Below, in pieces: positions 19,001 to 26,679 of a stretch of DNA of 64,000 nucleotides. Made by a program: the position numbers and the translations under genes. Each line of letters begins with the position of its first letter. Within the stretch, counting starts at the first letter, position 1. Location: the NCBI GenBank assembly GCA_021613535.1, contig CP075492.1, positions 7,130,001 through 7,194,000 of the forward strand, given 5' to 3'. The notes beneath the pieces are model-generated. The model had not been told where the DNA came from and searched no databases. It saw only the letters and a program-made list of their open reading frames with translations. This DNA is from Adineta vaga (lineage: Eukaryota > Animalia > Rotifera).

Positions 19001-20335
19001 TGGATTTATCAAATCATCTCTATGCTTGATTTGACGTACATAATGACAAAATAACATACTGAAAAGAAACATCAATCGCAAAATAGAGGAATCAATGTTC
19101 ATTGTCCTTATGTAAAATGCATCCGTTCAGATGATATTAGATATATTTGCTCACTGAAAATAAAGTAAACCTTTTGAATTGAAGCATTTTGTTACATATA
19201 ACATTTTAACCGCTCAATGTAACAATCTTCTGACACTTGACAGGTTTCAGGTTTCGAAATGTTAGAATATATCAAAATCGAGCTTTTGATATTAATCGAA
19301 TCTTTCAACTTTTTAGTTATCGGATTTTGATTCCAAAATATTGAACAATACTATCTACGATGAATTTGATTCGATTCCACTTGCTCGTATCAATAGTTCG
19401 ATTCAAGATGGACGATTAAGTGAAAATATTCGTCGAAATCGTTACGCTGATGTCATTCCATATGATGATACACGTGTTCGATTAATTCCAACGAAAGAAA
19501 ATCTTCATGGTTATATCAATGCATCTCATGTAAAAATTCGTGTCGAAAACACCATATATTCATACATAGCAGCGGAATCACCATTACCATTCACAGTCTA
19601 TGATTTTTGGCGAATGATATCTGGTAGTAATGTACATGTGATTGTAATGTTAATTGGTAATGATTCTCAATTATGTGCAAATTATTTTCCTAAGAATAAA
19701 AATGAAAAATGTCGAACAGATGAATTTGAAATTGAATTAATATCGGAACAAAATCGACAAGATTTTCATATACGACATTTACGATTGACAGTTATTAATG
19801 GAAAACGAACACGAACGATTGTTCATTTACAATATACAGCATGGGATGAAGCACAAATACCACTTGATACTTCATCATTTATAAGTAAAAAACGAGACAT
19901 AAGATGATTTTTGATACATAAAGAAATCTTTGTTTAGATTTCGTTAATGTTGCTAATAGTTTTCGAAGACATTATGGTGAAACAAATCCATGTCTAGTTC
20001 ATTGTACTGCTGGGTAAGAAAAATGATCGTCAGTCTATTTTCACTAACGATCTTCTGAATGAAATTGATAATTTTAGTATTGGCCGTACTGGAATTTTTA
20101 TTCTTATTCATGTTATGATTCAATGTATAACTTTTAACAAGGTAAAATCTTTACTTCAAACTTTTCTTTTCGATTTTCATTCTTTTTGTTTTTATCTCAT
20201 CTTTAGAAAGTAAGTGTTGCAAGTGTTTTGAAAGTCATGCGTGAACATCGTATGTCACTTGTTGATCGAACATATTCTTATGTTTTTGTCTATCGTTGTC
20301 TAATTGATTATCTAAAATCCTCAAGACTTATCTAA
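16084..20335 (+). CDS. Pez: FERM-domain protein tyrosine phosphatase of the Pez/PTPN14/PTPN21 family
   Basis: Multi-exon gene with a divergent FERM domain (YWLDPNLSMKQQI, YGMTHF), a Ser-rich linker with SVPDL, a PTP domain (RNRYADVIPYDDTRVRL, GYINASHV, DFWRMI, VHCTAGIGRTG), and the family-typical C-terminus LKSSRLI*. Confidence 0.85.
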
Positions 20336-20624
20336 TTATCAATACGTATACGTCTATCTATTCTCTCTCATTTAAGCATTCCATATTTGTAATTATCTAA
20401 ATATTCTCTTTTTTTTCTTTCTTTTGATATGAAAAACAAATCAAAACTTTTGTCTTTGTACTTATTTTTTTTCTCTCCTCTCTTTGTTCATTTGTGCTTG
20501 ATCAATGCGCTAAACTGTGTTCTTTTTTCTTTTTTTATTGTGTACTTATTCAATAAAACAAAAGCAATAATAAATAATTCAATGAAAAGAAGAGATATTT
20601 GACTTTCTTTCTTCAGATAAGATA

Positions 20625-23415
20625 ATGGTCGGATTATCAAATGAATCATCAACATTTTGTTTTGATCGAGATGAATTATCTAAGGTAGAAATCAATGTTC
20701 AACAAGTATTCTCTTTGATCAATAATGTCTATATTTTTATTTTAGACGGATTTTAATGTTGACGCATTTGTTGTAAAATATAAACGAGAAGTTGGATTAG
20801 AAAAATTACGGGATGATTTAGATTTATTTCTTCGTGTTCTTCAATCGAATATGGTTGATTTAATCAATCGAGATTTTGCAGATTTTTTGAATTTATCAAC
20901 AAATTTGGTACGAAATTTAACAATGTTATTTTCGTTCGAAAAGAAAATCATTCGATGGATTTGTTTTAGGTTGGTTTCGATAAATCAATAACAACATTGA
21001 AAAATCCATTGAGTGCAATGAAAGTGGATATTATGGTAAATGAGATTAGGCGATTATGTGTTGAAAGAAAAGAATTTGATTTAATTTTTGTTTTTTTTCG
21101 TTAGAAAATCAATGAAATTTTAAGTACTCAACGAAAACAAATCGAAGAAAAAGTACGTGAACAAGAAGCAATTCGTAAACGAAGAGAAATTATTCAATCG
21201 ATTATTGATGTGCAAAAGTCTGTACAACAATTAAATGAACTTGATGATGCAATTAATCTATCAAAGTAAACATTTCATTTCAATATATCGATAAAAAATC
21301 GTTCTGTCTTTCTTTGCTAGAATCGATATGAGTGAAATGATCGAACGTACCATTGTACAATTTAGTTTTATTTCCATTCAATTAGATAAATGTGGAGAAA
21401 ATGAACCAACAGTTGAATCATTAAAAACAGTAAGAAGATTTCTTCGAGCGAAAGATTTTATTTATCTAAATTCGCATTATTCGTTAGACAATTGAAAATC
21501 TTCGTCGAGTATTTGAAAAACGTTTAACAACTGCATTTATGGATGCCTATCGCGAACCAAATATGCCGTTGTTAGCAGACTCATTAAAAGGTTTAGCATC
21601 GATATCACTTCAAACAGTTGCAGAACAAACATTTGCCAATGAAATTGTTCGACCATATATGGAAAAAGTCAGTTAAATATTCATCTAAGTTCGATTGTTA
21701 GTTATTGATATGTGTTTTAGAATATTCGAAATATCTTATTACAATCCAGTGATATATCACCTGCATTTACACGAACATTAGATTTTATTCGTACGGAATG
21801 TAAAGCCATGCTCTATGTTATTGAACGTATCAATCGTGAATGTGGTAGTCATTTTGATTTTGTTGTTAATTCAATTTTTCCACAATTAACGCAATGTCTG
21901 GAAGAATCTTCTCAAAATTTTTTCTCTGCGGCTGATCCAGAAATATTTCACGAACGATATTCATCTTGGTTACAATTTATCTCTGAATTGGAAAGTCTTC
22001 TATCGAAAACAAGTGAACAAAATCTAAAAAATTCTCAAACTTATCAACATTTTTCTTCACGATGGGATGTAATTGTTTATTATCAAATACGATTTTTAGA
22101 AATTTCGAATGCAATTGAAAACATTCTTGTGAATCAACCATTTGCATTAAATGAAAAGATAGATTCTTCATATAAAACATTAATTACTTCAACAATCTTT
22201 CAATCTATTGAACGATGTTGGCAAACAAATTATTTTCTTGAACCATTAGTACATCAATTTTGGAAATTAACTTTACAATGTATTGTTCGATTTCGTGTAT
22301 GGATTGAAACATTTGATGTAAGTTTGTGAGAAGTAAAGAATAATCTTTTCGTTAATAATTTGAAATTTAATAGGGAAAAACAATGGATATGAAATTTCTA
22401 TTGAATCTCTACATTGATTTGAAAGTTTTTTGTGAAGAAGTAAAAACATTTTTTGAGAAAACAATTCTTGGTGAACGATTAACATCAATTATTTCTGTAT
22501 CGCCTAATATTACAAGGGAATTAACTAATGGTAAGGATACATATATATAAATAGAACATAATTGTGATCTTTTAAATTTAGTTTTGGATGAAACACTTTC
22601 AAATTTAATGAATAAATCTCGTCTTGATTTGAAGAATTTAGTAATTCAACAATTAATTCAACGTTGTAATGATGCACTTCAATCTGTACAAGATATACCT
22701 CGAATGTATAGAAAGACCAATCGAGAAGTAAGTTTAAGGTTATATTAACTTAGAACAGAATAAAAATGTACTCAAACGACAGAGATTGATAATCTTTGAC
22801 CTTTGACATTCTTCGACATAGACTCTACGTGATGTATTTATCTGATATTTCCCACTCAAACAACAGGAATATTCATAGAAAGAATCGAGATTAGTATGTG
22901 TACATCGATCAAATACAATTTCTTTTCTTTAGGCTCCAACAAAACCATCAAATTGTATTCCGACAACATTTCGTCATTTACAAACATTTGTCAATGATTT
23001 TAATGATACATTGTTAACATCTGATGAATGTCAAGAATTTCTTGCAATAACTTTGGAAGAAGTTACTAAACAGTATATCCTTCACTATCTGATTATTGCT
23101 TGTAAAAAAAAGTTTGGTGTTTTTTTTCCTTCTAGTTATTATGATTTATGTTCGGAAATTTTATCATCAGTGAAAAAAATGGAAGAAAATATACAACGTT
23201 TACGACGTGTTCGTGAATCGTCCAAAGCTTTGTCGAATATGACACAAAGTATGACCACATCTTCGACAGCTTCTTTAACCGATGATAATAAAATTCGTTT
23301 ACAAATTCAAAATGATGTCAATGCATTTTCTACTGAACTTGAAAAACTCAATATTGATATTGAATCGTCGAAGAAATTAGCTATTCTTAATGAAGAAAGT
23401 CGCTTACAAATTTAA
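20625..23415 (+). CDS. COG2: Conserved oligomeric Golgi complex subunit 2
   Basis: Multi-exon. FCFDRDE..DFNVDAFV..LEKLRDDL..LINRDFADFLNLSTNLVG, RWDVIVYYQIRF, DIPRMYRKTNREAPTKPS and DDNKIRLQI all match COG2. Confidence 0.93.
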
Positions 23416-23480
23416 TAAACATTGACTTTTCTTTGCAATTCTGTTTTTTTCCCTTCTTTTTAAATAAATAATACTTTTAG

Positions 23481-24281
23481 ATGAATATCTCACAATGGTT
23501 TATTACACCCGAAGAACTTTGTCAAATAAAGAATCTCTATTTATTAAATATATCATCGAATATTATGAATGATTTTGAAACAGATGAAATGTATAACTAT
23601 TGGAAATATCGTCAATTTGAAGACATACGAAAGATTCTTCTAACTAAATATCAAATAACACAGAATACATTTGTTGTTTTGTATACAAAAGAAAAACTTA
23701 TGATGGCAGCACGATTTGCTTGGTTGTTATATTGGATTGGATGTCGTCAAATTCGAATACTTATTGGAAAAATCGATCCTTGTTTATATATTAATAATCC
23801 ATGTCGATTGTCAACACTTCCCAATGTTCCATTACGACCAAATGTTCGAATGATATGTAGTGAATTGTTATCTGAATTTCATTGTTTAACAACGGAATTT
23901 ATAGATGTTCGAACATCCAGAGAATATTATGGAGAAATCACAGGTTATTCATATATTCATCGAGCTGGTCGTATACCGAATTTTCAATATGATTTACTTG
24001 ATGGTATATATGGAGAAATTAGAGGAGATATTACGTGGAATGAATTAGAAACATATTTAAATATGATGTTAATTACAAATCGATGTCGAAAAACGACGAA
24101 ACGAATTGTCTATATGTGTGGAACTGGATGGAGAGCAAGTTTATCAGCAATATTTGCTTTAGAATTAAAACTAGCAGAAACTATTACTGTTCTTGATTCT
24201 GGATGGTTCGAATGGTCTGAAGAATTCATGACTAATTCTTCTCTTTATGAAATCAATTCGATGAATATGTACGTAAAATAA
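23481..24281 (+). CDS. Rhodanese-family sulfurtransferase, bacterial YnjE-like (HGT candidate)
   Basis: Intronless 266 aa ORF. Motifs AARFAWLL..IG..IRIL.G, DVRT..EY.G..TGYSYI.RAGRIP, active-site loop CGTGWRAS and C-terminal DSGWFEW. CGTGWR and GYSYI are YnjE-subfamily hallmarks. Confidence 0.85.
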   Translation: MNISQWFITPEELCQIKNLYLLNISSNIMNDFETDEMYNYWKYRQFEDIRKILLTKYQITQNTFVVLYTKEKLMMAARFAWLLYWIGCRQIRILIGKIDPCLYINNPCRLSTLPNVPLRPNVRMICSELLSEFHCLTTEFIDVRTSREYYGEITGYSYIHRAGRIPNFQYDLLDGIYGEIRGDITWNELETYLNMMLITNRCRKTTKRIVYMCGTGWRASLSAIFALELKLAETITVLDSGWFEWSEEFMTNSSLYEINSMNMYVK

Positions 24282-26679
24282 GTTTGTTAAGTATAGAAAA
24301 GTGGAGAGAAAGATTTCATTCGAAAGATGATTTTTTAATTAAATAATTTTCTTTGACCTTCTTGCTTATATCCAAATACATGAAAGGCCGCTCCTCCTAT
24401 TCGATATGCTACTATTCCTAACGCATCAAATCAAATGAGAATAAGTCGTTATATATACAATTACTGATTTGTTCATTTACCGAGAAGGTCAACTCAGCAT
24501 CGCTTAAATGTTCTTCCGTATAATCACCATCACTGTGACCTAATAAAGAAGATAATTTAAACAATGTTATCATACGAGACATGCCTAATGGCAGTTGACA
24601 AGCAATCAAAACATCAATACCACGTGGAATATTGTTCTATTTTTTTCTAATTTCTTTACGAGGACAAACAAATATCGAATTGAAACCAGAAGAAAAACTA
24701 ATGAGAATCTAATAATCATTACATTAAACCTTAAAATTGCACTCATTTCTAAAACATTGAGAAACTTAATCATATGCTGTTTTGTTTGCGAATCAATATT
24801 CGATTGCTCTTGGAGAGAGATCTTGTTTTCTGATAGAAAGAAGCAAAGCAACTTTTTCGATGGAGTTTTTTCGTTTTTGAATCGTACTAGAATTTTTCTT
24901 TTACAGATAATTAACCATTGAATGAAATAGTAATTGAATTTATTTGAAAAATTGTTTTTTTATTTTTTCGATTCGAAAGAAGTAATTAATATTTTAGAGA
25001 TACAAAATATTTTTTTTCTAATAATAAAATTGCCGTGAGAAATGACTTGTCACATGATATTATTTGAAAATATGTCAAGTCATCATATGCACAATCATGC
25101 ATATTTACTTCGAAAGGTTTTTCTACCCGTTCTATATTTAAATGTCTAATCATCACGTTATCTTTCATCATACAACTAAAGAATACAATCATTACAGTCC
25201 AAAAAAAATTTTCGATCAAGGATATCGATAAAATAAAGCCCAGTACGTATCATCTATTTGTCCAAATATAATCATATATGTACGTCAAAAATGATATTTT
25301 ATGTAATTTATCATCCTGTTATATATGCGGTTGGATTTGAAAGAAAAGAAAATATGTATGACGTGATCAGTCGCAATAGGAATATATGATATTTGAAAAA
25401 AAAAGAAAAAGAAGAAGTGATTCATTTTATCTATTCTGACAGACTATTTCTACTACCTAAAATAATAAACATGTGTTGACATATTTCGCCTTGATAACTA
25501 TGATAGTATCAGTCGATCAATTGGATATAAAGTCATCGTCGCCGTCGTCGTCGTCTATCAACAACAGAATCATATGTTGATGTGTATTCATTGAGCTTCT
25601 GTTACATTCTCTTAGACAACATCAATGAGGAAATCGGATAATCATAAATAAATAGAACAAAATGCACGAACTAGATTTCCGTTGCTGTTTTGATTATTAA
25701 AAAAACTTAACCCACATAAAAGTATGTGAAATAAAAGCATGCATGAATGTCAAGCGTCTTTTGTTTTCATAACGCAATTGCTTCTCTGCCTATGACAAAG
25801 AAGAAGCAAAATGAGCGTGCGATTGTTCGCGAAAATTTTCTAGTGTAGATGTCGATTATTTGATTTTCAAACAGCCTAATGTATTTCATTTTTCACCAAA
25901 GGATATACTTCTCCTTCTTACTGTTTCTTTTTCTCTTTGTCTCTCTCCTCTGGTGTGATGAGTGGGCACTCATTCAATATTTTTCTTCACTTTTTCCATT
26001 CAATTTCAACACGCGCAAAAAAAACTGAAAAGTTCGCCAAAGGTGCTAAAACTTTTCTCTCCAGACATACTCCATACTGTCCTCCTGACAACAATAAACA
26101 TACAGTGTCAAACAAAAAAAAGTTTTCTTTTTTATACAATTTATTATTTATCAGTGCACACACTGTTTGGATGTGAAACGCAGCACGCGTCTCACTGTGC
26201 AACAAAACCAAACATACACACACACATACATATGTGCGTAAATTTCTGAGAAAGAACAAGTTTAAATAAACTCAAATAATTTCCCATTATTTTTCGCACA
26301 CATAAAGATTTGTACAAGAAAAAAAAACAAACAAGAAAACTTCGTATTGCAGTCGATAGTACAATATGTACTATTTGTACATACCACTTTTAAGTGAAAC
26401 AAAACAAACAAAAAAAAATATCTCACAAAGAAAACTGTTACATTGTATTTAGTACTAATAAAAAAATAAAGGTATTCTTTATACAATCGATTAGTTAAAA
26501 GTTCTTGCATTTAACTGAGATTTTTCAATTAAAGTAAGATGTACAATTTTCATTAGTGCACAAACAAAAGTGCACGTCATTTGCATAGAAACAAACAAGA
26601 AAAGAAAGAAAGAAAACGAAGAGAAATCATTGAACTGAGACATAACGGACGGAAGAATAAAGTCAAATATTTAGGTATA

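Follow-up and report, generated by a model that had tools for sequence, protein, structure and literature searches.

In the tunicate-type operons of Ciona and Oikopleura and in the SL1-type operons of nematodes, genes on the same strand are separated by little or no intercistronic sequence, one spliced leader (SL) serves all of them, and only a few nucleotides separate the upstream gene's poly(A) signal from the next trans-splice acceptor. In the SL2-type operons of C. elegans, AAUAAA, a U-rich stretch, and the acceptor follow one another within a spacer that is usually about 100 nt long. In Hydra, an animal with SL trans-splicing, the horizontally acquired gene flp is the downstream member of an operon headed by the housekeeping gene RFC140 (PMC3273482). 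Operons have not been reported in rotifers (PMC7986045), and no later report of rotifer operons was found in the literature searched.

The locus described here lies in a 64,000-nt stretch of the genome of the bdelloid Adineta vaga (contig CP075492.1, positions 7,130,001 to 7,194,000; hereafter the window), where a rhodanese-type sulfurtransferase gene directly follows COG2 (Table 1). It shares with the tunicate-type and SL1-type operons the same-strand arrangement with little intercistronic sequence, the single leader, and the upstream poly(A) signal a short way before the acceptor. It differs from them in an extra proximal poly(A) signal and in the distance of approximately 20–50 nt from the likely COG2 cleavage to the acceptor; furthermore, SL addition and a polycistronic precursor are what we infer for A. 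vaga. Compared with the SL2-type operons, the order of AATAAA, U-rich stretch, and acceptor is the same, with about 60 nt between the ends of the arrangement, but the spacer is shorter than usual and one leader exon type was found in A. vaga. What RFC140-flp has in common with this locus is an acquired gene as downstream cistron, preceded by a housekeeping gene, whereas the phylum, the donor type, and the gene are different, and the Hydra operon was shown by RT-PCR and transgenes while that of A. vaga is a proposed one.

Table 1. Positions of the features at the COG2–rhodanese locus, numbered from the first letter of the window.
Feature	Position	Strand	Basis or remark
FERM-type tyrosine-phosphatase/COG2 junction	20336..20624	+	sequence
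COG2, 11 exons/10 introns, 685 codons	20625..23415	+	GT..AG joints in 4 RNA runs; Pfam COG2_C on single exons
COG2 exons 1-6	20625-20684, 20746-20907, 20970-21035, 21105-21265, 21321-21429, 21488-21667	+	
COG2 exons 7-11	21721-22317, 22374-22530, 22582-22727, 22933-23072, 23136-23415	+	
COG2 stop TAA	23413-23415	+	frame ends ...LQI-stop
Proximal AATAAA overlapping the COG2 stop	23414..23419	+	sequence
Intercistronic spacer, T/C-rich, 65 nt	23416..23480	+	sequence
Conserved AATAAATAAT element, with the distal poly(A) signal AATAAA at 23463-68	23463..23472	+	cross-lineage conservation
TTTTAG 3' splice acceptor on the start codon; candidate spliced-leader acceptor	23475..23480	+	conservation
Rhodanese ATG	23481-23483	+	opens 801-nt ORF 23481-24281
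Tandem-rhodanese sulfurtransferase, YnjE/EanB-type, intronless, 266 aa	23481..24281	+	Pfam Rhodanese 3e-10; catalytic loop C213-GTGWRAS

An earlier note on this DNA had described a gap of 65 nt between the COG2 stop and the sulfurtransferase ATG, an AATAAA overlapping that stop, a T/C-rich spacer, and TTTTAG placed directly on the ATG, and all of these hold at the positions of Table 1; the operon-type layout of two same-strand genes that it proposed is likewise supported. Its further remark that the spacer has no GT donor stands as far as donor context is concerned, but a GT dinucleotide does exist at 23443–44 (ctGTTTTTTT). The phase-0 COG2 donor that it placed near 22728 is found as GAA/gtaagt at 22727/22728. 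The AATAAATAAT element may contain a branch site as well, and A. vaga probably relies mainly on the proximal AATAAA. The TTTTAGATG motif was found once in the 64-kb window versus 1.95 occurrences expected from shuffles, and the 21-mer AATAAATAATNCTTTTAGATG, at no more than two mismatches, gave 20 genome matches versus 19 for the reversed control; both counts are at chance level, and motif enrichment was dropped as an argument. The junction motif is not significant in a single sequence, and its significance comes from conservation across lineages only.

This conservation was read in 13 COG2-linked lineages (the window, L013, L014, L015/16/25, L023, L017/24, L019/20, L021, L022, L031, L032, and L033), from loci taken as genomic, with introns kept where checked and no transcript with a 5' end among them. 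Among the 12 linked lineages tabulated, the GC content of the locus lies between 0.25 and 0.50, and the identity of the rhodanese to that of A. vaga falls as low as 52% among the linked lineages. Across all 13, the spacer is 42–83 nt long. The COG2 C-terminus, LN(E/D)ESRLQ(I/V/L) followed by the stop, is kept in all linked lineages, and AG/ATG, preceded by a pyrimidine tract, is invariant in every lineage examined. In a ten-lineage set of nine linked and one unlinked lineages, the right-anchored pairwise identity is 0.97 over the last 6 nt, 0.57 at −12 to −7, and 0.49 at −18 to −13; beyond −18 it is 0.29–0.40, which is the random level (0.35 expected from base composition). The first 39 rhodanese codons give 0.63, 0.75, and 0.53 at their first, second, and third positions, respectively. 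The acceptor is therefore more conserved than the adjoining protein, at 97% versus 63–75% for codon positions 1 and 2, and judged from these sequences, strong purifying selection maintains the acceptor at the ATG across the 13 lineages. The junction is confirmed as a real, selected feature. The rhodanese N-terminus MNISKWF is conserved together with the ATG, and hence there is no upstream coding exon, the only possible partners of the acceptor being a leader or a non-coding 5' exon.

The conserved poly(A) signal of the junction is the second AATAAA, 12 nt before the acceptor in A. vaga, rather than the one at the stop codon. Of the 12 tabulated lineages, 10 have 12–16 nt between the end of this AATAAA and the acceptor, and L033, the thirteenth, has about 13 nt; in five lineages, including two loci with a GC content of 0.49–0.50, the distal AATAAA is the sole poly(A) hexamer of the spacer. 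A stop-proximal AATAAA or ATTAAA occurs in only 5 of 12 linked lineages, the stop-codon AATAAA of A. vaga being lineage-specific. Because the signal is so close to the acceptor, COG2 3'-end formation and the acceptor overlap and there is no space for an intergenic promoter, in agreement with the claim of the earlier note that the short spacer leaves little promoter room. With no promoter possible in the gap, the transcription units of COG2 and the rhodanese necessarily overlap. By its sequence, COG2 cleavage is predicted at or beside the acceptor in most lineages.

In a maximum-likelihood tree, all rotifer proteins form one clade on a very long stem, and the COG2-linked lineages are spread across it. 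The single unlinked lineage, P0019 (L018, L026–28), is nested in the crown beside the linked P0007 and is therefore a secondary relocation. Since the linked lineages span the tree and the unlinked one is nested, linkage to COG2 is ancestral for all sampled lineages. In this environmental lineage the relocated gene (L027 2693–3747) has no COG2 within 3 kb; its upstream neighbour, 80 nt away in head-to-head orientation, is an F-box gene, and its downstream neighbour is a P450-like ORF. It nevertheless retains AATAAATTTTAG/ATG, and the acceptor thus functions, or at any rate persists, in the absence of an operon. The rhodanese of this lineage sits on a long branch. Synteny in all linked lineages with downstream sequence also extends to the convergent downstream gene and to a kinase beyond it, and the argument that synteny reflects operon constraint was dropped for this reason. 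In the window, the rhodanese stop (24279–81) and the stop of the convergent gene on the minus strand (approximately 24336–38) are about 55 nt apart (24282–24345), so that the two 3' UTRs are very short or overlapping. In A. steineri (L013 168–2170), no match to the N-terminal COG2 exons is found upstream of the COG2_C part, and a Collar-domain gene on the other strand occupies the place expected for the COG2 N-terminus; this copy may be a 5'-truncated COG2, a rearrangement, or an assembly break.

Bdelloid rotifers carry unusually many foreign genes. In a PDB search with a profile of the rotifer proteins, the best matches of the sulfurtransferase are Chlorobium EanB (7e-24) and E. coli YnjE (3e-21), while bovine TST and E. 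coli SseA reach, like bovine rhodanese (7e-4), no more than about 1e-3. The CGTGWRAS catalytic loop is identical to that of YnjE and invariant in 12 homologues, and the motifs GYSYI and GW(F/Y)EWS are common to the rotifer protein and YnjE in the alignment. The AF2 model (pLDDT 85) is a tandem rhodanese, the best PDB folds being EanB and YnjE (E 8e-13). The likeness to YnjE/EanB accordingly consists of the tandem rhodanese fold, the loop, and the best sequence and fold matches; the differences are the lack of the first domain and of the signal peptide, and an identity of 21–31%. The three-domain architecture of approximately 420–460 aa with an extra N-terminal domain is absent from this 266-aa protein, which aligns only to residues 175–400 of YnjE and 218–449 of EanB, that is, to the last two of the three domains. 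The 14-residue C-terminal extension in A. vaga (24237–24278) is absent from most of the ~251-aa homologues and has a pLDDT below 50.

About 35 close homologues, with at least 50% identity and a length of about 251 aa, derive from A. steineri, A. ricciae, Rotaria sordida, Rotaria sp. Silwood1, and environmental contigs. Outside the rotifer clade, identity drops to 27–31%, to proteins of about 437 aa labelled SseA-type or YnjE-like. One uninterrupted ORF of about 250 aa makes up the rhodanese in every locus fetched; in A. vaga it has no intron, while COG2 has ten. The exact A. vaga rhodanese protein has no record in public assemblies, and a feature search of the ESM Atlas returned generic rhodanese clusters only and was uninformative on ancestry. 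The marks of horizontal acquisition in bdelloids are seen here, namely nearest non-rotifer relatives that are non-metazoan, a flanking COG2 with ten introns, and RNA contigs, in a comparison with an unsystematic sample of other eukaryotes. The bacterial derivation claimed in the earlier note agrees with the YnjE/EanB type, the intronless gene, and close relatives seen only in bdelloids and environmental contigs; on these sequence comparisons, bacterial ancestry is plausible and the family assignment well supported.

The RNA data are assembled contigs (k=31) of four runs, X1, X2, X5, and X10, which are RNA because GT..AG joints are present in all four. COG2 was searched exon by exon with Pfam and tblastn, and a frame check by script shows that the joined exons form a single open frame of 685 codons. 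An apparent alternative acceptor at 21721/21724 was rejected, as it is a T>C difference at 21723. The contig depth is 20–78 for COG2 versus 2–4 for the rhodanese, whose contigs cover 23521–23671, 23626–24031, 23710–24143, and 24003–24175 and are absent from run X5. The rhodanese is expressed, weakly. The 100.8-Mb, 6-contig assembly contains one copy of COG2 and one of the rhodanese, and no second (older duplicate) copy of the locus was found in the genome.

Around the spacer, the last-exon COG2 contigs of X1, X2, and X5 end flush at 23430, and 23431–23478 is uncovered there. X10 differs from the window by T for C at 23431 and by an extra T after 23443. Together with 23006 (A/G) and 23031 (T/C), at which two contigs of one run differ, these are variable sites of the RNA runs (23431, C/T; 23443, +T), and they look like heterozygosity of the clone that breaks the contigs at 23430. 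The flush end probably reflects a branch of the assembly graph at the variable site, beyond which coverage did not suffice for assembly, and most COG2 3' ends appear to fall soon after the proximal AATAAA. One X10 contig opens with 17 nt of exon 10, joined by splicing to exon 11, crosses the stop and the spacer, passes the acceptor unspliced, and ends at 23505. No X10 coverage falls on the 205-nt COG2 intron, which speaks against DNA or bulk unspliced precursor as the origin of the spacer-crossing RNA. As to the read-through of COG2 into the sulfurtransferase, for which the earlier note had suggested a search, RNA covers the spacer in one of the four runs, but a k=31 contig is no proof of a single molecule.

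The bdelloid spliced leader is present in the genome, with 59 matches to the core of the SL exon versus 0 for the reversed control. The same 23-mer is printed as 'Rotifera 1' (PMC3795323), and more than half of bdelloid transcripts are reported to carry it (PMC1925144, citing Pouchkina-Stantcheva and Tunnacliffe 2005). The copy examined in full reads CCAAGAG/GTAAAT, with a GTAAAT donor after the exon, and the leader end that would precede 23481 after joining is ACTTACCAAGAG. One leader exon sequence with close variants was found, several copies having single-base variants. The matches often form head-to-head pairs, with two SL exons about 154 bp apart; one such gene pair is at G000 C1:2551160–2551336 (L003 1501–1677), with about 25 further sites on C1, C2, C4, C5, and C6 and clusters at, for example, C5:9.88–9.93 Mb and C5:10.91–10.93 Mb. 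At 23481 the leader is not in the contigs, and the rhodanese contigs, at a depth of 2–4, stop short of the 5' end; at this depth a 23-nt SL dead-end tip would likely be clipped by the assembler. A chimera of 12 nt of the SL with ATGAA...AATGGTT gave 0 matches in JGI metagenome contigs, which is uninformative.

The junction upstream of COG2 is similar in layout to the COG2–rhodanese junction. The phosphatase stop is at 20333–35, followed by AATAAA at 20552–57 and by a pyrimidine tract with AG at 20615–16, and the COG2 ATG begins 8 nt further on. An X5 RNA contig covers 20303–20574, ending 17 nt past this AATAAA. The GC-rich lineage L031 has the phosphatase, COG2, and the rhodanese in the same order, and the unit may comprise three genes, starting at the phosphatase.

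Taken as a whole, the rhodanese is probably, on balance, the downstream cistron of an SL-resolved operon, with RNA reading through from COG2. RNA polymerase II on COG2 would continue beyond the poly(A) signals of that gene, whose mRNA would be cleaved and polyadenylated within the spacer; the 23-nt leader would be trans-spliced onto 23480/23481, giving the downstream RNA its cap and 5' end. The resulting rhodanese mRNA would have the leader alone as its 5' UTR, with the AUG immediately after it. We infer both the SL addition at 23481 and the supply of RNA from the COG2 promoter. As for the gene, it would be an old acquisition of a bacterial-type YnjE/EanB sulfurtransferase, still intronless and predicted to be catalytically intact. 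Counting against the operon, the depth gap between the two genes is large for one transcription unit, contig depth being a poor measure; in addition, the adjacency is conserved block-wide, and the acceptor is kept in the relocated lineage that has no COG2. The main rival, a less likely one, places a rhodanese promoter inside the 3' region of COG2 (last exon or intron), with a short outron removed by SL trans-splicing at 23480, as in non-operonic nematode SL1 genes. It is kept alive by the acceptor retained in the relocated lineage, which must use another promoter, and it also fits contig depths of COG2 and rhodanese that differ more than tenfold, in a ratio that varies between runs, as well as a synteny that is not specific to the pair. 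Such a promoter would, however, need to lie in coding sequence, its transcript would include the COG2 poly(A) signal all the same, 12–16 nt before its own acceptor, and the X10 spacer contig is continuous with spliced COG2 exons.

The remaining explanations concern the use of the acceptor itself. The earlier note had offered cis-splicing from the phase-0 donor at 22727 as an alternative, which would join in frame into a COG2–rhodanese fusion, and some automatic models of Rotaria sp. Silwood1 do fuse parts of the two genes (P0009, P0011, and P0146). In all four RNA runs, by contrast, 22727 is joined to 22933 and 23072 to 23136, while 22727 to 23481 is seen in none, nor does any contig of the four runs contain a joint into 23481 from another donor. 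Rotaria sp. Silwood1 also has stand-alone 251-aa models (P0144), the A. steineri and R. sordida models are stand-alone, and the COG2 stop, with the C-terminus LNEESRLQI before it, is conserved in all linked lineages. The fusion is unsupported, given the RNA joint absent from the four runs and the mutually inconsistent Rotaria models, and cis-splicing in general, including that from a non-coding rhodanese 5' exon, is very unlikely. The element might alternatively involve no splicing at all and be the COG2 poly(A) signal and cleavage site, with the rhodanese made from a spacer-initiated or bicistronic mRNA. An AATAAA 12–16 nt before the boundary would put COG2 cleavage about there, and the X10 contig has TTTTAG/ATG unspliced; but it is the pyrimidine tract and the AG that are most conserved, rather than AATAAA, the relocated lineage retains the element even though no same-strand gene upstream needs polyadenylation there, and the T or C at position −3 is a poor context for a start codon, which together make this highly improbable. 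For the SL-resolved operon, the fuller historical reading is an evenly balanced call: an ancient bacterial-type sulfurtransferase may have been kept behind COG2 as the downstream cistron since before the sampled bdelloids split, with a composite poly(A)-signal/acceptor of about 20 nt doing both jobs.

The locus bears on the question of how a promoter-less bacterial ORF gains expression in an animal. In an animal with SL trans-splicing, landing behind a host gene could suffice, the host gene providing transcription and the leader providing the cap and the 5' UTR. The flp operon of Hydra is a published precedent of the same principle and tempers the novelty of the present case. Meanwhile, the COG2–rhodanese junction adds to the case for bdelloid operons and, if the SL-resolved operon is true, would be a documented rotifer operon in which operon capture supplies the expression signals of a foreign gene.
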